The notes under the pieces were generated by a model that saw only the letters and a list, made by a program, of their open reading frames with translations, searched no databases and was not told the DNA's origin. The position numbers were made by a program, and so were the translations under genes. Positions 1,665 through 54,136 of a DNA stretch of 64,000 bases are shown piece after piece (positions within the stretch are counted from its first letter, which is position 1; each line of letters opens with the position of its first letter). The stretch lies in the IMG/VR virus record IMGVR_UViG_3300050120_000230, positions 248,001 through 312,000 of that record, one strand, 5' to 3'.

Positions 1665-2063
1665 ATGTTTTCGATGCGTGAACTGATGTTGATGGTCGAA
1701 ACCGAGCGTCCGAGAGAAGGGCCGCCGGTTCCCGACACGTTGTTCCATGGCACCGGTGAAGAAGCGTGGAATAGCATCCAAGAGAGCGACACCATGTATT
1801 CGTCGGATCACAGAGACGAAGACGCTATTTCCTTCACCACCGATTGGCACACTGCAAATCGCTTCGCACAAGCCGTAGCCAAGCGAGAGGGCGGCGCCGG
1901 AGTCATCATCGAGTTCAACGGTGACGATCTGGCTCGCAAGTTCAACGTCGAGCCATTTTCAGATAGTGGGCTGGTTCACGCCGAACAAGAATGGCTAGTC
2001 AAGGTTGGCAGCATCACACAGGTCACCCGCTATATCATTGGCGTGGAAAAGGTGTCCGCGTAG
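1665..2063 (+). CDS. Putative ADP-ribosyltransferase-fold protein with capsid-targeting-like N-terminus
   Basis: CTAAATA at 1654; LFHGT...SFTTD...A..FA...EQEWLV. Confidence 0.55.
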   Translation: MFSMRELMLMVETERPREGPPVPDTLFHGTGEEAWNSIQESDTMYSSDHRDEDAISFTTDWHTANRFAQAVAKREGGAGVIIEFNGDDLARKFNVEPFSDSGLVHAEQEWLVKVGSITQVTRYIIGVEKVSA

Positions 2064-3752: not shown

Positions 3753-4035
3753 AGGTCACGGTTACCAGCCCTCTAGCACAATTATCCGAGATAATCCAGT
3801 CGTAATAGACCATCTTGAATAGTGTTGCGTCAGCAAGACTCTTAAAAGAAAGGAAGACGAGGGTCGTTTGTTTCGTCCAACCGTCATTGTCCGGTTTGCC
3901 ATAGCCAGTTTTGGCTTTGGCTTTTATTCTGAAGTTGCAATTGGTGTTGAGCCACAGGATCATTTCATCGATCCATTCAGCAAACTTGGTGTCCTCGCTC
4001 GGCCCATCTAGATAGAACTTTGACCATTGGGTCAT
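3727..4035 (-). CDS. DAxxFK[LM]xW-family protein
   Basis: DATLFKMVYY. Confidence 0.7.
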   Translation of the reverse strand: MTQWSKFYLDGPSEDTKFAEWIDEMILWLNTNCNFRIKAKAKTGYGKPDNDGWTKQTTLVFLSFKSLADATLFKMVYYDWIISDNCARGLVTVTYDYDFEPR

Positions 4036-4547
4036 AGGAGAGCACGGCGCGTATTTTCTAGCATTTGCTCCGTCACCATTTGCTTCAGGATTTGACGTTT
4101 CGCTCTACGCTTTTGTTTGCTGCCTCGCGGCGCCTTTCGATATCGCACACGAAGCGCAAAAATCGCGGCCGTAGGTCCGGTCATCGGTTGCACGCCACAA
4201 ATGTCATAAGCGATGACATTCGGCATAGCACGGCGAACGAGCGAGATAAGAACGCGATTGAGTTTCTGTTCGTCGGTGATGATCTCCCCAGAGAAGAACA
4301 GCTTGAACAGAGTGGCGTCACGATTCGAGCGGAACTTCACCTGAATGAACGACGGCCATTTGAACTGTTCCCACGTCTGGCCGCCGCCAGAACTGCCGAT
4401 CTTCGCGACCTTGGCCGTCTTCGTTTTGTTGGCGCGCAACCATTCTTCAATGCGGTCGTGCATTTCGCGAAATTGATCGACGATTGCGTTCGCCGATGAA
4501 TTGGGACGCAGATCGGGCCGGAGGCAGAAAGTGGACCACTTGGACAT
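4032..4547 (-). CDS. DAxxFKL-family domain fused to a major-capsid (gp23) Gol-like segment
   Basis: DATLFKLFF followed by VLISLVRRAMPNVIAYDICGVQPMTGPTAAIFALRVRY. Confidence 0.75.
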   Translation of the reverse strand: MSKWSTFCLRPDLRPNSSANAIVDQFREMHDRIEEWLRANKTKTAKVAKIGSSGGGQTWEQFKWPSFIQVKFRSNRDATLFKLFFSGEIITDEQKLNRVLISLVRRAMPNVIAYDICGVQPMTGPTAAIFALRVRYRKAPRGSKQKRRAKRQILKQMVTEQMLENTRRALL

Positions 4548-4552
4548 TTGGT

Positions 4553-5113
4553 TTACGATGTCACGAAATTGAACGGAGCGCAAACGCCTCCGCTGAACTC
4601 GGCCGCTGCCTCAAGTGCCGCTTCAAGTCGCCATTTCGGCTTCAGGTTGGCATGAGTTCCGGTCGTGTAGAGCGAACCAAGCGCGTAGCTTTCTCCGCAG
4701 CCCACAGCAGCATACTCCATGAGATTTTCGCCGACTTGAAAATCTGCATCGATCTGGAAGAGGCGGCCCTGAGTCCCAACGAGGAAACAACCGCCGGTTT
4801 CTTCGTTGGAATCGATACGGCTGAAACCATGTTCTTTGAATGATTTTCGCAAGGCCGTAATGAACTCCCGCACCATGAACTCCATCAGCGGGTCATCGGT
4901 CTTGGCTTTATCGAAATCTTCGAACTTCGGTGGCTTGAAGTCATATTGAAGAATCTGACCCATCCGAAACGACGAGGTGAAGCCCATCGCGAAGTCCCCA
5001 TTGGTGAAAACCTTCTTGTCTTTGCGGATGACGATGTCGAGGCCAGACACACCGGCGCTGTCGCCTGCTAGATGCGTCTTACCCTTGTGGGCGATCCCAA
5101 CAATGCAAGTCAT
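4553..5113 (-). CDS. HslV/proteasome-type Ntn (Thr) protease
   Basis: Starts MTCIVG (N-terminal Thr nucleophile); AGDS; AVGCGESYALG. Confidence 0.75.
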   Translation of the reverse strand: MTCIVGIAHKGKTHLAGDSAGVSGLDIVIRKDKKVFTNGDFAMGFTSSFRMGQILQYDFKPPKFEDFDKAKTDDPLMEFMVREFITALRKSFKEHGFSRIDSNEETGGCFLVGTQGRLFQIDADFQVGENLMEYAAVGCGESYALGSLYTTGTHANLKPKWRLEAALEAAAEFSGGVCAPFNFVTS

Positions 5114-8070: not shown

Positions 8071-8414
8071 GGCGTTCGCGGCGGCTGCACGGCTGGCATA
8101 GGGACGCTCGCGTTGAACGGCGGGAACATGGATTCGCCTGCATCCATTCTCGCTTTCGATTCGCGCTGACGAAGTTCAGAGCGCATCCAGCGGGGAATAA
8201 CGAGCAGGACGCCAAGCGCCATGATAATCGTGATGGCGAAAACGCCGCCCAGAACCACCATGTCGTTAATACGATGCTCACCCAGAGCGGCCACGGCGAA
8301 GACGGCCGCAATGCAGCCGTAGCAGAACCATGGAGCGATTCGCTGAGCCTTTGTCGGCGGGGGAAGCGGGGGCGCCTTACCCGTGAACATTTCGCTGAGT
8401 TCTTCTGGGGTCAT
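8067..8414 (-). CDS. Membrane protein
   Basis: Two TM-like segments. Confidence 0.55.
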   Translation of the reverse strand: MTPEELSEMFTGKAPPLPPPTKAQRIAPWFCYGCIAAVFAVAALGEHRINDMVVLGGVFAITIIMALGVLLVIPRWMRSELRQRESKARMDAGESMFPPFNASVPMPAVQPPRTP

Positions 8415-9721
8415 GCAACCATGCCGCCCGTTTTCTTTTCGAGATCGAAGTTCGCATTGATGAACTCGATCACGTCGTTCGCGGGCGTATGGCGAGAGAA
8501 AACGATGTTCGGCCCGTGACCATCGAGCATGACGACCTTCATGTCTCGGCGATAGTTCACGGCCGACAGGTTGCGGCTGGTGTTCTGACCGCATTGGTGA
8601 CTGCCACACTCGTTCTCCCATTGCGACGCCACGGGCACGGCGTCGGGATGATTTTCACGCAGGGGCGAATGGAAGTGGACGATGCAGTCCAATTCGGGAT
8701 GTTCACGGAACACGACGCGTTGCGATTGGCCGCCGACCGAAGGCTTCGCGCCGTAGGCGATCACCTTGTTGTCGCCTTCGTATTCGACCAGCACGAGACC
8801 TTCCTTGGAAAGTTCGTTGAAGTTCCGCTTACGCTTGGACGTGATGATCCGGCCTTCGTCCAGCTTCACAGCGAAGTGCCCAGCGGTGACCCCTCGGAAC
8901 GGCTTGTAGGCGCCTCGTTCGATGCAGTAGTCCACGACGGCACGAAGGTTCTCGGGGATCATCGGCGAATCCCACGAAACCGAATCGCCCTCGACGACGG
9001 TCGAGCGGGTGTAGGTGTTCTCGATCCGACTCCTGACCATCTTGGCCAGAGCCGCGAGGACTTCGGCGCGGTCGGTTGTCTCCGAATAGCGGGTTTCTTC
9101 CGGCGCCACGATCATGTTGTTGCGGGTGACCGTGTCATTGGCCAGCACGAGGTTCAGACTGTCGCGCTTCAGCATGTCGAGCGCGATGCGGTATTGTTCG
9201 TCGGACGTTGCATCCGTAGTGGTTTTGAAACCGACGACGAAGATGTCCTTGCGCTCTTTCCTGATCTTGCCGATCAGCTTGGAAGCTGGTTGGAGGGTGA
9301 GCATCTGAGTGCCATCAGATGTCTTGAGACGAGGGGCGTGCGGGCCGGATGCAATGTTGGCCGGAGGGCCTTCACCTCGAATATGGGCAAGATGTTTGTC
9401 TTCCCACTCCTGATCCATTGTCTGGACCACACTGCCAGTATAATCACAGAGGGCCGCGTTCAGGATGATGCAACGCGTGTCCGGGTCGGCGACGAGCTTT
9501 TCCAGCAGCGTCGAAACGTCGGCGTTGGTGACCAGAGGACTGCGGTAGTCCGCCATCTTCGTCAGATGCAGGTTCACGTCGTAGTCGTGTGGGTCGCCGA
9601 TATGCGGAGCGAGGTGCTCATGTAGCGCACGAGCAGAGTTACCGAAAGCGGGCGCGGCGAGGGCCAGATGGTTGCGAACGTAGTTGAAAGTTCCGCCGCC
9701 GATGATGTGGATTTTCTTCAC
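8411..9721 (-). CDS. CoaB-like (DFP C-terminal) domain fused to a class II aldolase/adducin-like domain
   Basis: IIGGGT, ILNAALCDY, VVGFKTT, LVLAND (CoaB-like); GHFAVK..IITSKR, IVHFH, VMLDGHG (aldolase II-like). Confidence 0.7.
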   Translation of the reverse strand: MKKIHIIGGGTFNYVRNHLALAAPAFGNSARALHEHLAPHIGDPHDYDVNLHLTKMADYRSPLVTNADVSTLLEKLVADPDTRCIILNAALCDYTGSVVQTMDQEWEDKHLAHIRGEGPPANIASGPHAPRLKTSDGTQMLTLQPASKLIGKIRKERKDIFVVGFKTTTDATSDEQYRIALDMLKRDSLNLVLANDTVTRNNMIVAPEETRYSETTDRAEVLAALAKMVRSRIENTYTRSTVVEGDSVSWDSPMIPENLRAVVDYCIERGAYKPFRGVTAGHFAVKLDEGRIITSKRKRNFNELSKEGLVLVEYEGDNKVIAYGAKPSVGGQSQRVVFREHPELDCIVHFHSPLRENHPDAVPVASQWENECGSHQCGQNTSRNLSAVNYRRDMKVVMLDGHGPNIVFSRHTPANDVIEFINANFDLEKKTGGMVA

Positions 9722-10233
9722 GAGGGTTCTTTCATGAGCTTGGCGATGGCTGCTTTTTCCTTCGCCTGCAAGTCGTGTTCTTGTGAAATGTTTACGCGCT
9801 CGCGCCACCGCATGAACGCATTGAAGATGATGACTTGAGCCACGGTCGTGTTCGTGTTTCCGTTCTCACGACGAAATCCGGGCATGTCCGTTCCATCGAC
9901 CTTGACAGAAATAGATCGAATTTCAACCGGACTGTTGCCGATTGGATCGGCCCCGACGAAGATATTGATGCCGAGTTTATCGTTCCCAATTCCGAATGTT
10001 TCTTCTTTCCAATCCGCAGGATGGGCGTCAAGAAGGTCCGATATTTTCTGCGCGAGTTGATTTGCGGTCGCCTCTTGCATCGTAGGGGGCACGGGGACTT
10101 CCGCTTGATGGTGAGGCGTCATACCAATCCACACCGCATAACCTACCGCACAGACCAAAGCCACGATCCCACACGTTTGCAGGATGAGCTTGAACATCGG
10201 GCTGGGTTTAGGGAACTCGCGGATGATCTTCAT
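9718..10233 (-). CDS. Membrane-anchored protein
   Basis: N-terminal TM helix. Confidence 0.6.
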   Translation of the reverse strand: MKIIREFPKPSPMFKLILQTCGIVALVCAVGYAVWIGMTPHHQAEVPVPPTMQEATANQLAQKISDLLDAHPADWKEETFGIGNDKLGINIFVGADPIGNSPVEIRSISVKVDGTDMPGFRRENGNTNTTVAQVIIFNAFMRWRERVNISQEHDLQAKEKAAIAKLMKEPS

Positions 10234-11231
10234 GGCATCAGGGGGAACTTACCGACGAACGGGCGGGCTTCGCCCTTCTTGGCGAACACGTAGGCACAAG
10301 TGTCGAGCGGGATGAGATGGAAGCTGGCGCCGTCGCGCAGCGGATAGCTCGGATCATGCGTGACGCCCGTATGCAGTCCAGCCGCATCGGCGGTCTCGAC
10401 GGCGTCACGCATTTCGCTCTCGGTCACCGAGAGGACGATGCAAGTCCCGAAGCCATAGGCGGCGGTCTCCCACGAATCCAAAAGGTCTTCCAGCGCGTCG
10501 CCGAGTTGATTCGGGACGGTTTCCCCCGCTTTCTTGCGGGCCTCAAACACCATCTGGTTGGCGGCGTGGGTGCCTTGCGCGACGGCTTTGCCCGCGTTCA
10601 TCGACGCGAGATCGTTCCGCATCAGAATGTAGAGATACGGTTCGGCATCCTGCGAATCGTCCACTTTGGGGTTCAGGGTTGCCCAGAGCGCCGTCACGGC
10701 GGGATCGAGGCTGTCACCGAACATCTTGTGCGCTTTGTGGGCGCGGACGAACGTCGAAGCCGATTCGACCAGATCAGGTTCACTGGCAATCTGGCCTTCG
10801 GTTTCTTCCAACAGGGCATCACGCAGGTTGTGCACTGCCTCTTCGATCAGGTCTTTGTCGCCACCCTTAACGATGTCAACGACCGACCTTAGACGGCCGC
10901 GAAGAGATTGCGGATTTTCGGCCGCCCACTCCGCAGGCGTGATGACGCTTTCCGGGGGTTGCGGAAGATCGGCCGCCATCGCCAAGGCGATTTCTTCCTT
11001 CAGCCCGTTGATTGCCGCTTCCACATCCGTGCGATTCGGGCGGGTCTTCGACGACACGTTGGAGTAAATGGCCAGTGCCGAATAGAGGTTCTGTTCGACC
11101 GGGCTCCGTGTCTCGCGAACATCTTGTTCCGAAAGGCGATATTGCCGGAAAATGGACAGGAGGTTCACGCCAGCGAGTGCATCGGACAGGAACATCCGGG
11201 TCGCGACGATAACATCGGTGAAAGAAGTCAT
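10230..11231 (-). CDS. Peptidyl-tRNA hydrolase 2 (Pth2) domain with long unknown N-terminal extension
   Basis: YLYILMRNDLASMNAGKAVAQGTHA...FGTCIVL...HDPSY...DTCAYVF. Confidence 0.75.
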   Translation of the reverse strand: MTSFTDVIVATRMFLSDALAGVNLLSIFRQYRLSEQDVRETRSPVEQNLYSALAIYSNVSSKTRPNRTDVEAAINGLKEEIALAMAADLPQPPESVITPAEWAAENPQSLRGRLRSVVDIVKGGDKDLIEEAVHNLRDALLEETEGQIASEPDLVESASTFVRAHKAHKMFGDSLDPAVTALWATLNPKVDDSQDAEPYLYILMRNDLASMNAGKAVAQGTHAANQMVFEARKKAGETVPNQLGDALEDLLDSWETAAYGFGTCIVLSVTESEMRDAVETADAAGLHTGVTHDPSYPLRDGASFHLIPLDTCAYVFAKKGEARPFVGKFPLMP

Positions 11232-11279
11232 TGGATGCCCCTCAGTGAGCAACCAGAATAACTCGTAAACGAGATCAGG

Positions 11280-15099: not shown

Positions 15100-15684
15100 T
15101 CAACCAGTTTGGAACCGCGTCCGGGTAGAGCCCCATCCATCTCTGTCAGGAGCGTAAGGATCGACGATCACGAACTGATCGCCACGCTTCATGATGTTAC
15201 CCGAGTTCAAGTCCACCCAGCAGCCACCTTTCTGCGAATGAAGTTCCTGCAACGTATCTAGAAATAGTTGTTGCTCGGGCGAGAAATCCCATTGCTCGAA
15301 ATCAGCCTGTGGCTTGGAAGCAATGGACACCAACGTGTGCAGTCCGGCCGCTCTCTGCTCTTCAGAAGTGGTCTCTGACAACCGCTCGATGCGGATCATC
15401 CGCGCTTTTTCATTCAGTCGCACACCGTTGCCCCTGAACCGAGGCAAACAGGGATTGTTCCGGTGGGCTTTGCAGAATGAAATGAAACGGTCGTAGCATT
15501 CGTCATTGTAGACTTTGACGACTTCGTTGACGCGCGGGTTTTCGAAGACGAGACTAAACTCGCCACCACTGAGCATCGAGAAACCGAGGGTCTCCATGTA
15601 ATCTTCCAACTGTTCGACCGTCTCGATAGGACGAGAGGTGTGGACCTTAGCCCCGGCCAGTTCGAAAATCTCGTGAGAGCGCAT
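15100..15684 (-). CDS. Protein kinase-fold protein (T7 gp0.7-like) with capsid-targeting-like N-terminus
   Basis: SGGEFSLVF, VVKV, DLNSGNIM, IVDP; MRSHEIFE; CTAAATA upstream. Confidence 0.7.
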   Translation of the reverse strand: MRSHEIFELAGAKVHTSRPIETVEQLEDYMETLGFSMLSGGEFSLVFENPRVNEVVKVYNDECYDRFISFCKAHRNNPCLPRFRGNGVRLNEKARMIRIERLSETTSEEQRAAGLHTLVSIASKPQADFEQWDFSPEQQLFLDTLQELHSQKGGCWVDLNSGNIMKRGDQFVIVDPYAPDRDGWGSTRTRFQTG

Positions 15685-15691
15685 CCCCTAT

Positions 15692-15964
15692 TTAGGAGAG
15701 GAACATCTTCAGAATGGTCAAGTCATGCTGCATACGGTCAAGGTCGCCGTTCTGTCTGACTATCCCGCTTGGATTCCACTCCATGCTCCACACGCGGCCG
15801 ACCTGTCCATCGTCGTAGCGCATCAGGAACCAGTGCGTCTTACCCTGATGCGACGCTGAGCAGGCCCACATGACGATACCTTCAAGCTTGGCCTCGCCAC
15901 CCGCCGACAGTTCTCGCAGATTCTTCCACGCGACCTTGGCGGTCTCTAGTTGAGACTCGCTCAC
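15692..15964 (-). CDS. GD..F..D subfamily protein
   Basis: NGDLDRMQHDLTILKMF. Confidence 0.6.
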   Translation of the reverse strand: MSESQLETAKVAWKNLRELSAGGEAKLEGIVMWACSASHQGKTHWFLMRYDDGQVGRVWSMEWNPSGIVRQNGDLDRMQHDLTILKMFLS

Positions 15965-16260
15965 GTCCGGCCCGTGAATTCTTCGTTGAACCTTTCAGGC
16001 GGAACGGTGCTCCACCGAGTCCCCCACCGGCCATCGCGGGTGACTTGGAACATCGTTGGGAGTTTCACGAATTCCTCGAACAATTGCCACTTCATATCCG
16101 TTCGATCTTGCCCTCGGAAACGCTCGTCATCTGTCGTCAGGATCGTGGTGACGTATTCGAGCGTGCATCCTAGATGCCGGTGAACACCGCTCATCTTGGC
16201 CATAAGCTCGGCCTTCTCGATCACGAGAACGGCCGCCGCGAGCGTTTCCGGTTCGAGCAT
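15961..16260 (-). CDS. Hypothetical protein
   Basis: Overlapping gene run. Confidence 0.5.
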   Translation of the reverse strand: MLEPETLAAAVLVIEKAELMAKMSGVHRHLGCTLEYVTTILTTDDERFRGQDRTDMKWQLFEEFVKLPTMFQVTRDGRWGTRWSTVPPERFNEEFTGRT

Positions 16261-16695
16261 TCAGGCAACCGTGACGAACGTCAAGCCGGGTTCGTTCGCG
16301 AACTCGGCGTAGTCGTGCAGGTAACCGTCCGTGACGACGATGGCCTTGTCGGCGCCGGAAGCGCGGAAGTCGGCGACGATCTTGTAGAGCATCGACGGGC
16401 CGTCGCACCGATCAAACAGCGTTTCGATCTTGCTGTGGCGGAAGTAGCCAATCGTGCGAACGTCGTAGCTGAAAGTCTTCAGCACAGCGAACGGCTTGTT
16501 GATCGTCTGAAGCTTCTGGATCATCTTCGTCCGAACAGAATCGACGCTGATGCTTCCCGATGTATCGACGTAGATGGTGGTCTTCTGACCAAGCGTCGCG
16601 GCGATGAAGAGCACGGCGAACGTGAGCACCAGAAGAATGACGACGCAAGAAATGGTCATCGTGAGTTGGGGATGGGCGGATGCAAAAGCGATCAT
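16261..16695 (-). CDS. Membrane-anchored truncated vWA-domain protein
   Basis: N-terminal TM; YVDTSGSIS (MIDAS DxSxS), VVTDGY. Confidence 0.65.
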   Translation of the reverse strand: MIAFASAHPQLTMTISCVVILLVLTFAVLFIAATLGQKTTIYVDTSGSISVDSVRTKMIQKLQTINKPFAVLKTFSYDVRTIGYFRHSKIETLFDRCDGPSMLYKIVADFRASGADKAIVVTDGYLHDYAEFANEPGLTFVTVA

Positions 16696-16710
16696 GTGTG
16701 CGTCTCCTGT

Positions 16711-16962
16711 TCAGAGGTTGGGTTCGGCGCGGACGATGTCCATCAGTTCGCGCATCCGGGTCGGGTTGTTGAGTTGCACCCGCTTGCCGCCGGACTTCAC
16801 GTAGAAGTCCACGCCGTTGGCGTTCTTTTCCCGAGCGAACTTGGCCCGGTTCCGAAGCAGATGGAGGTAGGCGGACTCGATGTCGCCGAAACTGTCGGAA
16901 TGCTCATTGTGGGTGAGACCATCCGTGCCGCCGTAGCTGAAATATGCCGCGAAAGTCGCCAT
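16711..16962 (-). CDS. Hypothetical protein
   Basis: Follows early promoter TTGACG-N16-TACTCT (minus strand, near 17000-17025). Confidence 0.55.
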   Translation of the reverse strand: MATFAAYFSYGGTDGLTHNEHSDSFGDIESAYLHLLRNRAKFAREKNANGVDFYVKSGGKRVQLNNPTRMRELMDIVRAEPNL

Positions 16963-19427: not shown

Positions 19428-20036
19428 GTGCGTATTTTTCAACTCTTCGAGGCGGCGAGTTTGCCCATGGACCCGGAATCTCGGTTCCGCCGGGCCGAAG
19501 AGCTTGGTTTCACCGTCAAAGCGTTCCATGGCACCGGAGCAGACTTCCATTCGTTCTCGCTGGCCAAAGGTAAGCCTGCGCGCGGTGGTGGCTACGCCCC
19601 GATGTTCTCGAACGTCCCCGGCGAGGCTGGCGGCTACGCCAACAAGATCAAGGGTCATGTTCTTCCCGTTCTGCTGAGAATGCAGCGGCCGATGGAAATC
19701 AGTCACCTCAAGAAACCCGGCATGGACAAGCTGCTCGCCGGTGTCCCTTCACGATGGGATGACGGCGCCAAGAGTACCCGAGACGTGATGGATTCGGTGT
19801 GGAAATACTGGTTCGACAAACTGGGTGACCAAAAGAAAGCATGGACCGAAGTGTATCGCCACTTCGCCGCGCTGGGATACGACAGTTTCGTGTTCGCCGA
19901 CATCGAGCGCGACTATCCCGATGGCGCCACGGATTCGTTGCACACGAAGTTCGTCATCTTCGATCCAAAAAATGTTCGTTCGATTTTTGCGGCATTCGAT
20001 CCCAGCAAGGCGAACTCCGCGAACCTGCTGGCTTAG
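19428..20036 (+). CDS. ART-PolyVal-like ADP-ribosyltransferase domain protein with capsid-targeting-like N-terminus
   Basis: MRIFQLFEA; AFHGT..F..F...MFS...A.GYA...VLPVLL...GYDS...IFDPKNVRSIFAAFDP. Confidence 0.65.
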   Translation: MRIFQLFEAASLPMDPESRFRRAEELGFTVKAFHGTGADFHSFSLAKGKPARGGGYAPMFSNVPGEAGGYANKIKGHVLPVLLRMQRPMEISHLKKPGMDKLLAGVPSRWDDGAKSTRDVMDSVWKYWFDKLGDQKKAWTEVYRHFAALGYDSFVFADIERDYPDGATDSLHTKFVIFDPKNVRSIFAAFDPSKANSANLLA

Positions 20037-20753: not shown

Positions 20754-20963
20754 ATGGGACAAATGCTGATCTTCCCCGAGTGGGCTTTCAAGGTGTCGAA
20801 TGCCGAGATGCTCATCATGCTCAAGGCGCTCGGTGGCCGCCTTCGAAATGACGACGAGATCGCCGAAGCGAAGGAACTGGGTGACAAGCTCACTCGCAGT
20901 CGCATCTCTGAGTTGGAGCATGTGACCACCCACCTCAAGAAGTCGATGGAGGAAAGTAGTTGA
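20754..20963 (+). CDS. Hypothetical protein
   Basis: SD AAGGAG upstream. Confidence 0.6.
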   Translation: MGQMLIFPEWAFKVSNAEMLIMLKALGGRLRNDDEIAEAKELGDKLTRSRISELEHVTTHLKKSMEESS

Positions 20964-20989
20964 CGAGAGCTAAACTCTCGGACTAAATA
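20960..20989 (+). promoter_or_regulatory. Hybrid promoter TTGACG-N17-CTAAATA with inverted repeat CGAGAG-ctaaa-CTCTCG in the spacer
   Basis: Directly visible; predicted TSS at or near ATG 20995. Confidence 0.6.
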
Positions 20990-20994
20990 GGAGG

Positions 20995-21036
20995 ATGAGA
21001 ATGACGGTCACCACGCGAACAACGACCACCGGCTGA
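20995..21036 (+). CDS. Thr-rich leader peptide MRMTVTTRTTTTG (putative attenuator uORF)
   Basis: 7 of 13 codons are Thr; stop codon inside a hairpin; 34 nt upstream of tRNA-Thr genes. Confidence 0.7.
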   Translation: MRMTVTTRTTTTG

Positions 21037-21070: not shown

Positions 21071-21153
21071 GCCACGGTGGCTCAGCGGCGACAGCGCGTC
21101 ATTCGTAATGACGAATACAAACACCGGGGGTTCGAGTCCCTCCCGTGGCACCA
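21071..21153 (+). tRNA. tRNA-Thr(CGT), enlarged variable loop, encoded CCA
   Basis: Acceptor GCCACGG/CCGTGGC; anticodon stem CGTCA/TGACG, loop TT-CGT-AA; T-loop TTCGAGT. Confidence 0.85.
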
Positions 21154-21171: not shown

Positions 21172-21335
21172 GCCGGTTTAGCTCAGTTGGTAGAGCAGTG
21201 GTTTTGTTTCCGTGGCGGGTAATAGCCTCGGGTCGAGCGATCTTCGGATCGCTCCCTTTGAAGGACAGAGAGCCTAAAGCTCACAAGTCCAAGGAAAACC
21301 GAAGGTCGCGGGTTCGAGTCCTGCAACCGGCACCA
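21172..21335 (+). tRNA. tRNA-Thr(TGT) interrupted by an 88-nt insert (21208-21295) directly after the anticodon
   Basis: Exons GCCGGTT...GTGGTTT-TGT and AA-ACCGA-AGGTC-GCGGG-TTCGAGT-CCTGC-AACCGGC-ACCA rebuild a canonical tRNA. Confidence 0.8.
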
Positions 21336-21999: not shown

Positions 22000-23760
22000 T
22001 CACCTTCGAATGCCGTGCTTCTCGATGTAAGCCGGGATGCCCGGCCGCAATTCGATCATGTGCTTGTAGCTCATGTGCTGTTCGAAATACTCGGCGTAGG
22101 TAGCTGCGTCTCTCATCGGCAAAGACTTGAACGCCATGTCGAACGCTTTGATGTTGTGGTTCATGAGTGTCGTGAGGAAGCGTGACCAGTTCATGCCGGT
22201 GTCAGCTTCGCTCTTGTAAGACATCACGAAATATTTGTAGAGCAACTTGGGTGAGATGTTCTGCGGCGAGCGCGAACCGAATGCCATCACTTCCCTTGTG
22301 AAAGCTTGGATATCATGCGTCATCGCCCAATCAACCAGTTCGTCATTGGCCGCCCGCCCGTGATGGTTCTGCCCAATGACCTTACCGATGTAGCTGGGAT
22401 CGTTTTTCATGATCGTGATGAGTGCCTCGGTTGAGAACGGCACCTTATCGAAGTAGTAGGCGAACTTCGTGGCGTTCTCGTTGAGATAGGCAAGAACTCC
22501 GGGGCGAACGATCTCGGCATGTAGGAACTTTTCGAGTGAGTCCGGGTGCTGTTTCAGAAGAGCTACGAGTTTTTCGTCCGTCATGGGCATCCAACGGATG
22601 AGTCCGATGTAGCCGAAGTAGACGAACTCTATCCAATGCTTCTCGAAAAATTCCTGCGTTCCCTTCGGTAGAATGTCGAACGGGATCAGATGCGGCATCG
22701 ACGACAGGTTCTTTTTCATCACGTCTTCCGCGAGCCCGGCCGCAACTTTTCCGGCCTTCAAATCGCGCATGAACATGCCGGGATTTTCCGAGTAGATTTG
22801 GACGTAACCGCGTTCGCTTTGCACATCGGCGCGATTGTCTACGACTTCCAACACCCGCAGATTTTCTTTCGAGAAGAAGACCGCCTGTGTGGGTTCATTT
22901 TCATGGATGATGCCCCTGTCAGTCGGATCGACCACACCGGAGTATCCGAGCGCACGAAACAGCTTCGACCATTGAGCGCGGACGGTGGCTTTCGCTGCTT
23001 CGACGATCACACTCTCGCTGGTGTATTCGTCTTCTTCGGCCTCATCGTCGTGATCTTCCCAATCATCGTCTTCATCATCGTCGGGCACGAAGTCGTCTTC
23101 ATATTCTTCGTCCTCATCGTCGTCTTCGCCATATTTGATCTCGACGAAATCGCGAGCGTCGGGATTGCCATGAACGCCGTTGGCGATATTGGTCAAATAC
23201 ATCGCAGCGATGCGGGTCACGTTCCAGAAAGCGCCAGCAGTCGATTGAACCAGTGCATGTCGTTCGGCACGGTCCACGTCGATGCGGATGTGCAAACCTT
23301 GGTGATCCATAATAGTCTGGATTTTTTCAACATCTGCTCGCATATCGGCGCGGCTGTAGGTGGACAGGTCGAGTATCTTGCCGCCTGCACGGAAGACCTG
23401 AATGTAAGGCTCGTTGCCTGCGAAAGGCACGACGCCTTTTTCTTTGATGACGTAATCGACCGGATAGGAATAGATGCCAATCGGGGTGTCGTATTGTGAT
23501 TTCGGATTGATACCGAACTTCGTGCCGCGAACGTTGTGGGCACCCTTCTTCGAACTTACGCCGCCTTTGAAGGCAGTATCGGCGCGTAGCTTGTTGCCAT
23601 GACTGGCGACGCCAACATCAGAGACGTAGCTGACGAACACGTCTGTCTGTCCCGCATATTTGGACAATTCCTCTACGGTCGAACGCTTCGGCGCCAACCC
23701 GCCTGCTCGGCGCTTCTCACTGAGGAGAGAACGGTTGTTGAAAAGTTCGACCAGACGCAT
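22000..23760 (-). CDS. Large capsid-targeted-type protein with central Asp/Glu tract
   Basis: MRLVELF...LLSE; ATAAATA 4 nt upstream; DDDEDEEYEDD... tract. Confidence 0.75.
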   Translation of the reverse strand: MRLVELFNNRSLLSEKRRAGGLAPKRSTVEELSKYAGQTDVFVSYVSDVGVASHGNKLRADTAFKGGVSSKKGAHNVRGTKFGINPKSQYDTPIGIYSYPVDYVIKEKGVVPFAGNEPYIQVFRAGGKILDLSTYSRADMRADVEKIQTIMDHQGLHIRIDVDRAERHALVQSTAGAFWNVTRIAAMYLTNIANGVHGNPDARDFVEIKYGEDDDEDEEYEDDFVPDDDEDDDWEDHDDEAEEDEYTSESVIVEAAKATVRAQWSKLFRALGYSGVVDPTDRGIIHENEPTQAVFFSKENLRVLEVVDNRADVQSERGYVQIYSENPGMFMRDLKAGKVAAGLAEDVMKKNLSSMPHLIPFDILPKGTQEFFEKHWIEFVYFGYIGLIRWMPMTDEKLVALLKQHPDSLEKFLHAEIVRPGVLAYLNENATKFAYYFDKVPFSTEALITIMKNDPSYIGKVIGQNHHGRAANDELVDWAMTHDIQAFTREVMAFGSRSPQNISPKLLYKYFVMSYKSEADTGMNWSRFLTTLMNHNIKAFDMAFKSLPMRDAATYAEYFEQHMSYKHMIELRPGIPAYIEKHGIRR

Positions 23761-39940: not shown

Positions 39941-41422
39941 GTGGGACGTAAGCAGCTAACGAAGACCTTCGATCATCGCACCGAAGAGTCCTCGATCTAT
40001 CAGAATTGGGAGACTAGCGGTGCGTTCGCCCCTCGCGGCGACGGTCCTGCTTATTTTCTCCCAATGCCACCGCCGAATATCACCGGCATCTTGCACATGG
40101 GGCACGCACTTTTCGCGACCCTGCAAGACATCTCGACCCGCTATCATCGCATGAAAGGGGACGCCACGTTGTGGCTGCCGGGAAGCGACCATGCGGGCCT
40201 CGCAACGCAAGACAAGCTCGATGCTCTCATGATCGAGCAAGGGCTCGACCCTAACGGTCCAGAGTTCGATGCGTTCGCGGAAACCTACAAGCTCAGCCTG
40301 CAAGGCACGATCATGAAACAGCTTCGAAGCTGTGGTGCATCGTGTGATTGGTCCCGCGAGACGTTCACGCTCGACGACCGCTACTCCAACGCCGTCCAGA
40401 CGGCTTGGAAAAAGTGCAACGACGCTGGCCTGACCTACGCCAAGGAAGGTGAACTCTTCATCAACATGGAGCCATTGGCCAAGCGTCTGCTTGACCATCT
40501 CGATGCTGGTGATCTGAAGATCATTCCGGCCGGTGGAGAAGGAACTCTGCGGAACTTCCTGACCAAGATCGAGCCATGGAACATCAGTCGTAAAATCCGC
40601 TGGGGTCACAAAATCCCCGGATGGTTCCACGACGGGCACAACATGGTCTTCGATACATGGTTCTCGTCGGCACTCTGGCCGTTCGCCACGCTTGGTTGGC
40701 CAGACGACACCGAAGACATGCAGCGATTCTACCCGGCGGCCATGATCGAAACGGCTGACGACATTCTGTTCTTCTGGTGTGCGCGGATGCTCATGATGGG
40801 CCTCCTGCTCACCGACCGTCTGCCGTTCGACACGATCTTCCTGCACGGTTTGATCCGTGACAAGCACGGAAAGAAGATGTCGAAATCGGCTGGCAACGGC
40901 ATCGACCCACTCGACATCATCGAACGTTACGGCGCCGACAGTATGCGGTTTGCCTTGGCCGAAGCTGCCACGCCCGGTCAAGACATGAGGATGTGGGACG
41001 ACAAGTTCCAAGCAGGCAAAGCTCTGCGGACGAAACTGTGGAACGCCGCTCGATATTCCTTGGCCCATTACGAACGCCTAGGAAGCCCGCAGGAGCCCTT
41101 TAAGCCCTCGAAGCACTACGACGACGTTGAGATGGAAAAGAGGCTCACAGCGGCTCACAGGGACGCTACAGAGGCATTTGAAGAGCTACGTTACCACGAG
41201 GCTGCTCATGGGATCAGAAAGTTCATCTTCGAAGACTTGTGTGGCTGGTATATCGAGGCCACGAAGAGCCGTCTATACGACGAAGATGACCAAGATGCTC
41301 TTCAAACCCTGATGTGGGCTCTGGATGGCACGTTGAAGATGCTTCATCCGATCATGCCGTTCATCACTGAGCGCATTCGTGAGGCATATTCGGGCACGCC
41401 GCTCATCACAGATGCGTGGTAG
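39941..41422 (+). CDS. valS: Minimal valyl-tRNA synthetase (no CP1 editing domain, no C-terminal coiled coil)
   Basis: PPPNITGILHMGH, GSDHAGLATQ, WNISR..RWGH.IP, VFDTWFSSALWPF, KMSKS, YG.D..RF, LHP.MPFITE. Confidence 0.95.
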   Translation: MGRKQLTKTFDHRTEESSIYQNWETSGAFAPRGDGPAYFLPMPPPNITGILHMGHALFATLQDISTRYHRMKGDATLWLPGSDHAGLATQDKLDALMIEQGLDPNGPEFDAFAETYKLSLQGTIMKQLRSCGASCDWSRETFTLDDRYSNAVQTAWKKCNDAGLTYAKEGELFINMEPLAKRLLDHLDAGDLKIIPAGGEGTLRNFLTKIEPWNISRKIRWGHKIPGWFHDGHNMVFDTWFSSALWPFATLGWPDDTEDMQRFYPAAMIETADDILFFWCARMLMMGLLLTDRLPFDTIFLHGLIRDKHGKKMSKSAGNGIDPLDIIERYGADSMRFALAEAATPGQDMRMWDDKFQAGKALRTKLWNAARYSLAHYERLGSPQEPFKPSKHYDDVEMEKRLTAAHRDATEAFEELRYHEAAHGIRKFIFEDLCGWYIEATKSRLYDEDDQDALQTLMWALDGTLKMLHPIMPFITERIREAYSGTPLITDAW

Positions 41423-49549: not shown

Positions 49550-49621
49550 GCAATCTTCGTCTATCGGCTAAGACGCCTTGCTTTCCGGCAGGAAAGAGCA
49601 GTTCGATTCTGCTAGGTTGCT
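49550..49621 (+). tRNA. Atypical tRNA-Gly-like gene with non-canonical (6- or 8-nt) anticodon loop
   Basis: GCAATCT/AGGTTGC plus U73; T arm AGCAG-TTCGATT-CTGCT; CTTGC-TTTCCG-GCAGG. Confidence 0.6.
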
Positions 49622-52198: not shown

Positions 52199-54136
52199 AT
52201 GACCGAACCCTACGATCACGCGACCGTCGAGCAGAAATGGCGCCAGTTCTGGGCGAAATCACGCCTGTTCGATCAGGCGCTCGCAAGCCGGACGAAGACG
52301 AAATACTACGTGCTGGAAATGTTCCCGTATCCCTCGGGTCGCATCCACATGGGGCATGTCCGCAACTACGCCATCGGCGACGTGCTGGCGCGCTACAAGC
52401 GCAGCCAAGGCTTCAACGTGCTTCATCCCATGGGCTGGGACGGCTTCGGCCTGCCCGCTGAGAACGCGGCCATTGAAAATGGCACGCACCCTGCGGACTG
52501 GACGTTCGCCAACATCGCCGCCATGCGTGAGCAATTGAAGCGTCTGGGCTTGTCCGTGGACTGGACGCGCGAAATCGCGACTTGTGACCCGGCGTACTAC
52601 GGTGAGCAGCAAAAACTCTTCCTGCGGCTGCTGTCCGCTGGTCTCGCCTATCGCAAAGAAAGCGAAGTCAACTGGGACACCGTGGACAACACTGTGCTGG
52701 CCAACGAACAGGTCATCGACGGTAAGGGCTGGCGCTCGGGTGCACCTGTCGAGAAGCGGATGCTGACCCAGTGGTTCTTCCGAATCACCAACTACGCCGA
52801 TGAACTGCTGGACGGTTTGAAGACCCTGTCGAACTGGCCGGAGAAGGTCAAGACGATGCAGCAAAACTGGATCGGCAAGGACGAAGACGGCAACACGATG
52901 CTGCGCGACTGGGGCGTGTCTCGGCAGCGGTATTGGGGTTGCCCGATCCCGGTGATCCATTGCACCGAGTGCGGCATCGTCCCGGCCGAAACGCCGGTGA
53001 TCCTGCCAAAAGATGTGGACTTCACAATCCCCGGCAACCCGCTGGCCAACCATCCGACGTGGAAACACGTCGCGTGCCCGACGTGCGGCGAGGATGCGAC
53101 GCGTGAGACCGACACCATGGACACGTTCGTGGACTCGTCGTGGTATTTCGCCCGCTTCGTCAGCGCCGACCCCGCGAACCCGATCTGCGATGCGGGCATC
53201 GATCATTGGATGCCGGTCGATCAATATGTCGGTGGTATCGAACACGCCATCCTGCATCTGCTGTATGCCCGGTTCTTCACCAAAGCGTTGCGCGACACGG
53301 GCTGTTGGCGAGTGGACGAACCATTCACCGGGCTGTTCACGCAAGGCATGGTCACGCACAAGACCTATCGAACCGTGATCGGCAAGGAATGGGTCTACCC
53401 GGAAGAAGTGACCCTCAACAGCGACGGCGTCACGGCCAAGATGACCGCCACCGGACTTCACGTCGAAATCGGCGCGGCCGAGAAGATGTCGAAGAGCAAG
53501 AAAAACGTCGTCAGTCCTGACGCGATCTTCGACAAGTATGGCGTCGATGCCGCCCGCCTGTTCGTGCTGTCAGACAGCCCGCCGGAGCGCGATTTCGTGT
53601 GGTCCGAAGCTGGTGTCAAAGGCGCCGCAGGATTCATCCAGAAAGTCTGGAACGTCATCAACGAACCCGATGGCGTGCCGGACCAAACCAACATCATCCT
53701 GACCCACCAGACGATCAAGGACGTGACCGATTGTCTGGACAACTTCAAGTTCAACAAAGCGGTCAGTCTCCTGCATGTTTTCGTAGCCGGGATCACCGGT
53801 AAGGCCGACGTGGCGACCAAGAAAATTCTGATCCAACTGATCTCGCCGATGACGCCACATCTGGCCGAAGAGGCATGGCACGATCTCAAGGGTTGCTACT
53901 CCATCGTGGATGAACCGTGGCCGACGTTCAATCCCGCTCTGTTGGTGCCGCCGAACGTCACCATGCCGGTGTCGGTGAACGGCAAGCGCCGCAGCGAGAT
54001 CGTTGTCCCGCTGGATCACGCCGACGACTTGGTCATCGCCATTGCGACGGCTGATCCCGAAGTCATGCGCTTCATCGGCGATGGTGTGAAGAAAGCCATC
54101 GTCGTCAAGAACCGCATCGTAAATCTGGTGGTGTGA
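52199..54136 (+). CDS. leuS: Leucyl-tRNA synthetase lacking the CP1 editing domain
   Basis: [89 protein letters not shown]. Confidence 0.97.

Follow-up and report, generated by a model that had tools for sequence, protein, structure and literature searches.

Small introns in phage tRNA genes and the interrupted tRNA-Thr locus

The closest described counterparts of the element reported here are the "enigmatic" tRNA introns of the Lak megaphages (Devoto et al. 2019, PMC6784885), which are intervening sequences of about 80-115 nt in tRNA genes of very large phages that fall into no Rfam class and are present in some genomes but absent from close relatives. One of these lies in tRNA-Thr(TGT), and the authors report that it is offset by one nucleotide from the predicted 37/38 site; read against their Table S6, this places the intron after nt 36, with TT as its first nucleotides. 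The Lak introns are AT-rich and carry an embedded tRNA-like element, the discriminator base of which coincides with the 3' end of the intron in three of the four printed sequences (our reading of Table S6). Two other kinds of tRNA intron also provide points of comparison. Bacterial and phage group I introns occur in the anticodon loops of tRNA-Leu(UAA), fMet, Ile, and Arg tRNAs, with those in fMet, Ile, and Arg tRNAs also lying 3' of the anticodon, whereas archaeal and eukaryal bulge-helix-bulge (BHB) introns are removed by EndA/Sen endonucleases together with RtcB or Trl1.

We analyzed a 64,000-nt stretch of DNA (here called the window), part of the 415-kb viral contig IMGVR_UViG_3300050120_000230 (JGI Ga0500009_000031; source sample JGI 3300050120/SRR35930614), which derives from a T4-like jumbo phage. 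The phage encodes a tail sheath, a tail-sheath stabilizer, a virion protein, and a gp23-like segment, together with two class I aminoacyl-tRNA synthetases, PTH2, and several tRNAs. Its tRNA exons resemble those of Rhizobium and Brevundimonas phages, and a sigma-70-like promoter and encoded CCA point to a bacterial host, probably an alphaproteobacterium. An initial annotation, made from the sequence alone, described a tRNA-Thr(UGU) at 21172-21335 with an 88-nt structured insert immediately 3' of the anticodon, and our analysis confirms this observation. When 21172-21207 (exon 1, 36 nt, plus strand: acceptor 5' strand, D arm, anticodon stem 5' strand, and U32-U36 including the anticodon UGU) is joined to 21296-21335 (exon 2, 40 nt, plus strand: A37, A38, anticodon stem 3' strand, variable loop, T arm, acceptor 3' strand, A73, and CCA), ARAGORN calls a canonical 76-nt tRNA-Thr(tgt), and the two exons match uninterrupted phage tRNA-Thr genes as two separate BLAST alignments. 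Default gene finders miss the gene: neither ARAGORN in bacterial mode nor Rfam calls it, and ARAGORN in intron mode misassigns it as tRNA-His.

The insertion site is fixed by a related phage (L124), whose neighboring 586-amino-acid protein is 62% identical and which has the same operon with the identical tRNA (positions 4998-5073, 76/76 nt) uninterrupted. The alignment gap is exactly 88 nt (21208-21295, plus strand), and because the insert starts with T and ends with A while the flanks are T and A, neither end can be slid, placing the insert unambiguously between nt 36 and 37. The flanks of the two loci are only 59% (upstream) and 45% (downstream) identical. An independent Logan assembly of an SRA run is identical over 6.4 kb, insert included, so the interrupted gene is not an assembly artifact.

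The interrupted gene is the second of two tRNA-Thr genes in an operon. The first, tRNA-Thr(CGU) at 21071-21153 (plus strand), has a 12-nt variable loop and is called by ARAGORN and by the Rfam tRNA model (53.9 bits). A promoter-like site, TTGACG-N17-CTAAAT, lies at 20960-20988 (plus strand) in front of the operon, with the same TTGAC-N17-CTAAAT arrangement at the same place in L124 and a similar TTGACT...GACTAAAT before the tRNA pair of a more distant phage (L145, described below). Its function is inferred, and a consensus scan did not list it, as the -10 rule of that scan requires T-A...T. Between this site and the tRNA genes, at 20995-21036 (plus strand), is a 13-codon Thr-rich mini-ORF (MRMTVTTRTTTTG, followed by a stop codon), which is context rather than part of the intron; L124 has a mini-ORF of the same length (MSMKNTPRTTTTV) with an identical 18-nt core, and the stop codon lies in the 5' arm of a hairpin in both.

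Predicted fold and conservation of the insert

In the predicted fold of the full transcript the intron forms a separate domain that leaves the acceptor, D, and T arms intact. The anticodon stem is extended by three pairs, U32-A38, U33-A37, and U34-A88 (the last intron nucleotide), formed by 21203-21205 with 21295-21297 at pair probabilities of 0.84-0.92, into a four-way junction from which three hairpins radiate. Hairpin 1 (21209-21232, intron nt 2-25; probability, 0.98) consists of two short stems around a 1x1 mismatch with a UAAU-containing loop. Hairpin 2 (21235-21254, nt 28-47; 0.99), a variable peripheral helix, has 8 bp capped by a cUUCGg tetraloop, and hairpin 3 (21255-21294, nt 48-87) has 4+4+4 bp with a 4-nt bulge (UGAA), a 3x4 internal loop (AGA/ACAA), and a CUAAA loop, its base abutting the 3' splice site. 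All three lie on the plus strand. The insert folds better than shuffled sequences (z = -3.15, 1/200). Of the structural elements in the initial annotation, the hairpins GAGCGATC-TTCG-GATCGCTC and GGAC..GAGC-CTAAA-GCTC..GTCC are present and form with a probability of >0.98 in the ensemble. The proposed closing helix, by contrast, is not supported: the complementarity TTCCGTGG/CCAAGGAA exists (7 of 8 positions), but it competes with hairpins 1 and 3 and has low probability, and in the homologous intron only 2 of 6 alignable positions pair.

First searches for relatives of the insert returned nothing. No second copy was found in the window, two word patterns scanned against IMG/VR returned only the window's own contig or chance hits, and a 20-mer from hairpin 2 and its 3' flank gave one chance hit, in Caballeronia, in 185,579 representative genomes. 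Of the other pattern scans of public collections for copies of the insert or for interrupted tRNA-Thr genes, one found only adjacent tRNA pairs, two gave chance hits, and one found nothing, although such scans miss matches that span a storage-chunk border (two of them did not return the window's own contig for this reason) and our words lay in the variable parts of the intron and so missed the family. BLAST searches of the insert and of its homologue against phage and plasmid collections, Rfam at E ≤ 10, and a full-text literature search for the hairpin 3 sequence likewise gave nothing. Similarity of the insert to the upstream promoter region scored below the shuffled null, and no second copy or hairpin-3-like element was found anywhere in 1.3 Mb of sequence examined.

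Patterns aimed at interrupted tRNA-Thr(UGU) genes did recover two other phage genes with inserts after nt 36, of 30 nt (L128) and 27 nt (L132), both with perfect exons and with U as the first intron base. Our pattern required an insert at this site that starts with T, so their position is not independent evidence. These inserts are single hairpins in which the splice sites lie across one continuous helix with a 2-bp stagger and a 2-nt 3' overhang, which is RNase III-like; the window's intron lacks this geometry, and a covariance search found no sequence shared with them.

A homologue was found with a covariance model built from the insert alone (R1) and run over all loci retrieved in this study. 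The neighboring 586-amino-acid protein had yielded nothing closer than 62% identity; of four more distant homologues of this protein, three lacked the tRNA locus and the fourth, 31% identical and from a distant T4-like phage lineage (L145), carried the intron. The R1 hit at L145 5932-6020 scores 63 bits, and a second model that includes the anticodon stem (R2) scores 70 bits. The 87-nt homologue lies at the same site inside a different tRNA-Thr(UGU) gene (L145 5898-6060), whose exons are 60/76 identical to those of the window, with different acceptor and anticodon stems. The same interrupted gene occurs in four assemblies from different samples (source samples for the L145 type: LIAN20-1 samples and SRR9061376/SRR9061317). 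A related phage (L153) has the orthologous locus with an uninterrupted tRNA, in which exon 1 is 36/36 identical and exon 2 differs only by a compensatory G49-C65/A49-U65 pair in the T stem, with an alignment gap of 87 nt. In that lineage the junction can be read as 36/37 or 37/38 because the intron begins with A, but the window fixes it at 36/37.

The two introns are 69% identical overall, but very unevenly. Hairpin 3 is 38/40 identical, and its only two changes are in unpaired positions, whereas the stretch from nt 1 to the end of hairpin 2 is 26/52 identical and the exons are 60/76 identical, which indicates selection on the intron RNA itself. The hairpin 3 core spans 21261-21282 (GGACAGAGAGCCTAAAGCTCAC, with a C/A variant). 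On the R2 alignment all 66 cells of the 34-pair structure pair, while slid controls pair at 32-47%. Five pairs carry compensatory changes (one in the anticodon stem, one in hairpin 1, and three in hairpin 2, which is a 10-bp helix with a different loop in L145), and two carry one-sided changes, including the last intron nucleotide, A in the window and G in L145, which keeps its pair with U34. RNAalifold returned the same consensus. With only two distinct sequences and an alignment fitted to the model, this covariation is supportive rather than conclusive. Both introns share a 3-nt junction strand (G35 U36/N1) that contains the inferred 5' splice site, a bipartite hairpin 1 with a 1x1 mismatch and a UAAU-containing loop, a variable hairpin 2, and a hairpin 3 joined without spacer to hairpin 2 and, through one purine, to A37. 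Both interrupted genes also keep a perfect cloverleaf, the anticodon loop UUUGUAA, and G1-C72, C2-G71, G35, and U36, which are identity elements of Escherichia coli ThrRS.

Comparison with known intron and ribozyme classes

The initial annotation's exclusion of group I and group II introns on length, of a clean BHB, and of known ribozyme cores is upheld. At 88 nt the insert is shorter than group I introns (at least about 140-200 nt; the smallest natural self-splicing forms are at least about 200 nt) and has no P3-P9 core or Rfam Intron_gpI (RF00028) hit at E ≤ 10. It shares with group I tRNA introns an anticodon-loop location in a bacterial-type tRNA gene, a U before the 5' splice site, presence/absence among relatives, and the lack of an ORF seen in some forms, but its last nucleotide is A (21295) rather than G, and only an all-wobble P1 (GUGG with UUGU) can be drawn by hand. 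Group II introns are several hundred nt long, with a 5' GUGYG, domain V, a bulged A in domain VI, and a 3' AY; the insert begins UUCCG and has no Rfam hit. Like BHB introns it is small, lacks a catalytic core, lies next to the anticodon, pairs anticodon-loop nucleotides with its 3' end, and probably depends on an endonuclease and a ligase. However, two 3-nt bulges separated by a 4-bp helix, each cut after the second bulge nucleotide, are not found: the only candidate 4-bp helix drawn by hand (U32-G35 with intron nt 83-86) has low probability, gives a 4-nt 3' bulge, places the 5' cut one nucleotide off, lacks the inner helix, and competes with hairpin 3, whose pairs have probabilities of ≥0.7. 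The host is moreover a bacterium's phage, with a sigma-70-like promoter, encoded CCA, and an alphaproteobacterial-type tRNA, and no EndA was seen in the part of the contig inspected.

No match to any self-cleaving ribozyme family (hammerhead, twister, twister-sister, pistol, hatchet, HDV-like, or hairpin) was found with Rfam 15 in permissive mode at E ≤ 10, either in the window or in L145. The element also lacks the features of a miniature transposable element (MITE) or IS200/IS605-type miniature element, being single copy in the window, without a target duplication, and with terminal complementarity that is not conserved. A solitary CRISPR repeat (RNA anti-CRISPR) was considered for hairpin 2; there was no CRISPR-DR Rfam hit and no array was found with the 20-mer, although this was one exact word, and hairpin 2 is the variable part of the family. 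RNase III-type excision fits the L128 and L132 inserts but not this intron, in which the offset is 3 nt in the favored fold, or a 1-nt 5' overhang in the fold with the closing helix. A tRNA-like fold of the insert and a kink-turn or hairpin-ribozyme reading of hairpin 3 were rejected by hand.

As in the Lak megaphages, the intervening sequence lies 3' of nt 36 of a large-phage tRNA and is polymorphic among relatives, and it begins with TT as in the Lak tRNA-Thr(TGT) intron. The 36/37 position, which the initial annotation contrasted with the canonical 37/38, is thus not an oddity. The window's intron is GC-rich, is built from three hairpins on a four-way junction, and has no tRNA-like element, as ARAGORN and the Rfam tRNA model find nothing inside 21208-21295. 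We saw no sequence similarity to the Lak introns by eye.

Possible routes of removal and implications

We conclude that the insert is an intron of a phage pre-tRNA-Thr(UGU) and belongs to a small, previously undescribed family of ORF-less structured introns between nt 36 and 37 of tRNA-Thr(UGU) genes in T4-like large phages. The analysis establishes the insertion, its exact site, the family, the conserved structure, and the intact exons, whereas the occurrence of splicing itself, the chemistry of the ends, and the enzymes are inferred from sequence alone. The initial interpretation, which offered a new mini-intron or ribozyme, a pro-tRNA activated by an endonuclease plus ligase (possibly by a host anticodon nuclease itself), or a decoy RNA, is partly supported: an absence of covarying homologues had been named in advance as grounds for rejection, and instead a homologue that keeps the structure was found, while each interrupted gene has an intronless orthologue with intact, identical or near-identical exons, which supports a new mini-intron. 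Two diverged copies in flawless tRNA genes, RNA-level covariation on the tRNA strand, and a core more conserved than the exons are what one expects of an intron removed from the RNA and are hard to reconcile with a dead gene, and we consider splicing more likely than not. Both introns might, however, have spread recently by recombination through the conserved exons, which would weaken the argument from exon conservation.

We tentatively favor a protein-dependent mechanism, in which an endonuclease of the phage or host, using hairpin 3 and the junction as its recognition element, would cut in the G35 U36/N1 strand and one nucleotide past the base of hairpin 3. The exon halves would stay held together by the tRNA body and be sealed in the anticodon loop by an RNA ligase, either RtcB or a T4-type Pnkp/Rnl1 pair. 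The known tRNA introns of this size (archaeal and eukaryal) are protein-spliced, and the invariant stems and changed unpaired positions of hairpin 3 agree with this view. Against it, no bacterial or phage endonuclease is known to excise such an intron, and no RtcB, Rnl, Pnkp, EndA, or HEPN nuclease was found among about 60 ORFs of the window or in about 30 kb of flanks, together about 94 of 415 kb. This search did recover two class I aminoacyl-tRNA synthetases, ArgRS, PTH2, an HD domain, a metallophosphoesterase, a dual-specificity phosphatase, ART-fold proteins, an Acb1-like protein, and PrkA. A weak Tpt1/KptA hit to the ORF at 1665-2063 (E = 0.007, below the Pfam cutoff) was not upheld, as the protein is a generic small ART fold.

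An autocatalytic mini-intron is a less likely alternative, in which the four-way junction and hairpin 3 would form a new small ribozyme that cleaves at both sites and perhaps religates, or in which host RtcB or phage Pnkp/Rnl1 would seal 2',3'-cyclic phosphate and 5'-OH ends; reverse splicing would explain spread without a homing endonuclease gene. Both splice sites lie at one compact junction next to a nearly invariant 40-nt element, the two intron-bearing loci share no conserved neighboring gene that could encode a dedicated splicing protein, presence/absence is seen in two lineages without any ORF in the intron, and 87-88 nt is in the range of known self-cleaving ribozymes. On the other hand, the insert matches no Rfam ribozyme at E ≤ 10, is far smaller than any known self-splicing intron, and lacks the terminal G of group I introns, changes confined to unpaired nucleotides are the reverse of what a catalytic core usually shows, and two cleavages plus a ligation are a lot to ask of 88 nt.

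It is also unlikely, though possible, that the intron is not spliced and that the chimeric RNA is itself the product, a stable tRNA scaffold processed by RNase P and 3' enzymes that displays hairpin 3 as a protein-binding or decoy module and could, for example, sequester a host factor or an anticodon nuclease. The conservation of hairpin 3 beyond that of the exons, the partly buried anticodon (U34 is paired and the loop is replaced by a junction), and the hyperstable cUUCGg hairpin, typical of a stable structural RNA, are consistent with this. However, a display scaffold has no need to keep all seven anticodon-loop nucleotides, the exact 36/37 site, or the ThrRS identity elements, all intact in both lineages, and each lineage has a relative using the same tRNA without the insert. 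Equally unlikely is a selfish or accidental insertion that spread by recombination through the conserved exons and left a young pseudogene, for which the lack of detected splicing machinery, the rarity of the element (two sequence types in all the data reached here), and possible cover by tRNA-Thr(CGU) or other tRNAs elsewhere in the genome can be cited, but against which stand the two diverged copies in flawless genes, the pairing kept through compensatory changes and the U34 pair kept through an A-to-G change, which argue for selection at the RNA level on the tRNA strand, and the absence of a target-site duplication, of terminal-repeat conservation, of a second copy in the window, and of copies in 185,579 representative genomes for a 20-mer beyond the one chance hit.

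A more speculative and doubtful possibility, not excluded by the evidence, is that these elements represent a third kind of bacterial or phage tRNA intron besides group I and group II, an ~88-nt ORF-less mobile element specific for the U36/A37 site of tRNA-Thr(UGU), whose hairpin 3 either forms a new small ribozyme with the junction or recruits a still unknown bacterial or phage RNA-splicing endonuclease. Either way, an RNA ligase would act in routine tRNA maturation in bacteria.

Protein-dependent tRNA splicing is regarded as an archaeal and eukaryal trait, and the unexplained Lak introns were reported in 2019 without a conserved RNA motif that could be tested. The present locus makes the question testable, supplying a compact 87-88-nt family with a defined consensus structure, two matched pairs of interrupted and intronless genes that fix the splice sites to the nucleotide, and a 40-nt core that is better conserved than the tRNA itself, and it also shows that default tRNA finders miss such genes in phage genomes. 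If the intron is spliced, then either there is a new small ribozyme, or bacteria or phages have an RNA-splicing endonuclease-and-ligase route, which would give a physiological job to RtcB or to phage Pnkp/Rnl; if it is not spliced, hairpin 3 on a tRNA scaffold is a new phage noncoding RNA.

Sequence context of the tRNA-Thr genes

Directly upstream of the two tRNA-Thr genes lies a 13-codon Thr-rich mini-ORF (window 20995-21036; MRMTVTTRTTTTG, followed by the stop codon), which starts 6 nt after a promoter-like TTGACG-N17-CTAAAT site (20960-20988). The related phage L124 has a mini-ORF of the same length (MSMKNTPRTTTTV, followed by the stop codon) with an identical 18-nt core, and in both phages the stop codon lies in the 5' arm of a hairpin. 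This arrangement resembles a thr-attenuator-style leader placed in front of tRNA-Thr genes, but no U-tract terminator follows.

The upstream tRNA-Thr(CGU) (window 21071-21153) has an unusual 12-nt unpaired A/C-rich variable loop (AAUACAAACACC). The same odd tRNA type, with anticodon UGU, occurs in a 642-kb uncultured phage (LR756502.1) and in Sinorhizobium phage Phosso (loci L001, 1501-1581, and L002, 1495-1577), while L124 has an ordinary tRNA-Thr(CGU) at this position. We also note that a family of 580- to 600-aa proteins with no Pfam or PHROG match lies within about 1.2 kb of the tRNA-Thr(UGU) gene in three phages, two with the intron and one without (window 22000-23760, minus strand; L124 3183-4973; and 3001-4746 of L145, from a distant T4-like phage lineage). 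More distant homologues of this protein have no tRNA nearby.

Other tRNA and protein-coding genes of the region

At the end of a cluster of Asp, Gly, Glu, Glu, and Gly tRNAs, ARAGORN called a "tRNA-???" with a two-base anticodon (window 49550-49621), which may be a tRNA with an odd anticodon loop or a decayed gene. The region carries a heavy load of translation and anti-defence genes (window 39941-41422, 52199-54136, and 10230-11252, together with 8134-9723 of locus L146 and 15421-16911 of locus L147), comprising two class I aminoacyl-tRNA synthetases, ArgRS just left of the window, a PTH2-domain protein, and an Acb1-like 496-aa protein and PrkA just right of it.

Two ORFs have an ADP-ribosyltransferase fold. 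The first (window 1665-2063, plus strand) has a weak, sub-threshold hit to Tpt1/KptA (E = 0.007), and its nearest atlas clusters are PARP-, Arr-, and Tox-ART-like; the second (19428-20036, plus strand) is ART-PolyVal. A further ORF (window 4032-4583, minus strand) matches only the first ~45 positions of the Pfam gp23 major capsid profile and positions 53 to 106 of a PHROG major head protein, and its neighbouring ORFs, an HslV-like peptidase and a DprA-like protein, are unrelated. It is probably a protein carrying a capsid-targeting or propeptide-like segment rather than a split capsid gene.

Short hairpin inserts in other phage tRNA-Thr(UGU) genes

Two unrelated phage tRNA-Thr(UGU) genes carry hairpin inserts after nt 36, of 30 nt in the phage locus L128 (2684-2787) and 27 nt in the phage locus L132 (2343-2443). 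Negative results from our pattern scans of sequence collections are slightly less complete than they look, as patterns starting at window position 21189/21190 did not return the window's own contig although the match is there; the stored contig appears to be cut at 21199/21200, where locus L127 begins, and matches across such borders are therefore lost. In both short inserts, G35 and U36 pair with the last two intron bases, so that the two splice sites lie across one helix with a 2-bp stagger and a 2-nt 3' overhang, below a 10- to 11-bp upper stem. This is RNase III-like geometry, which would leave ends suited to an Rnl-type ligase.
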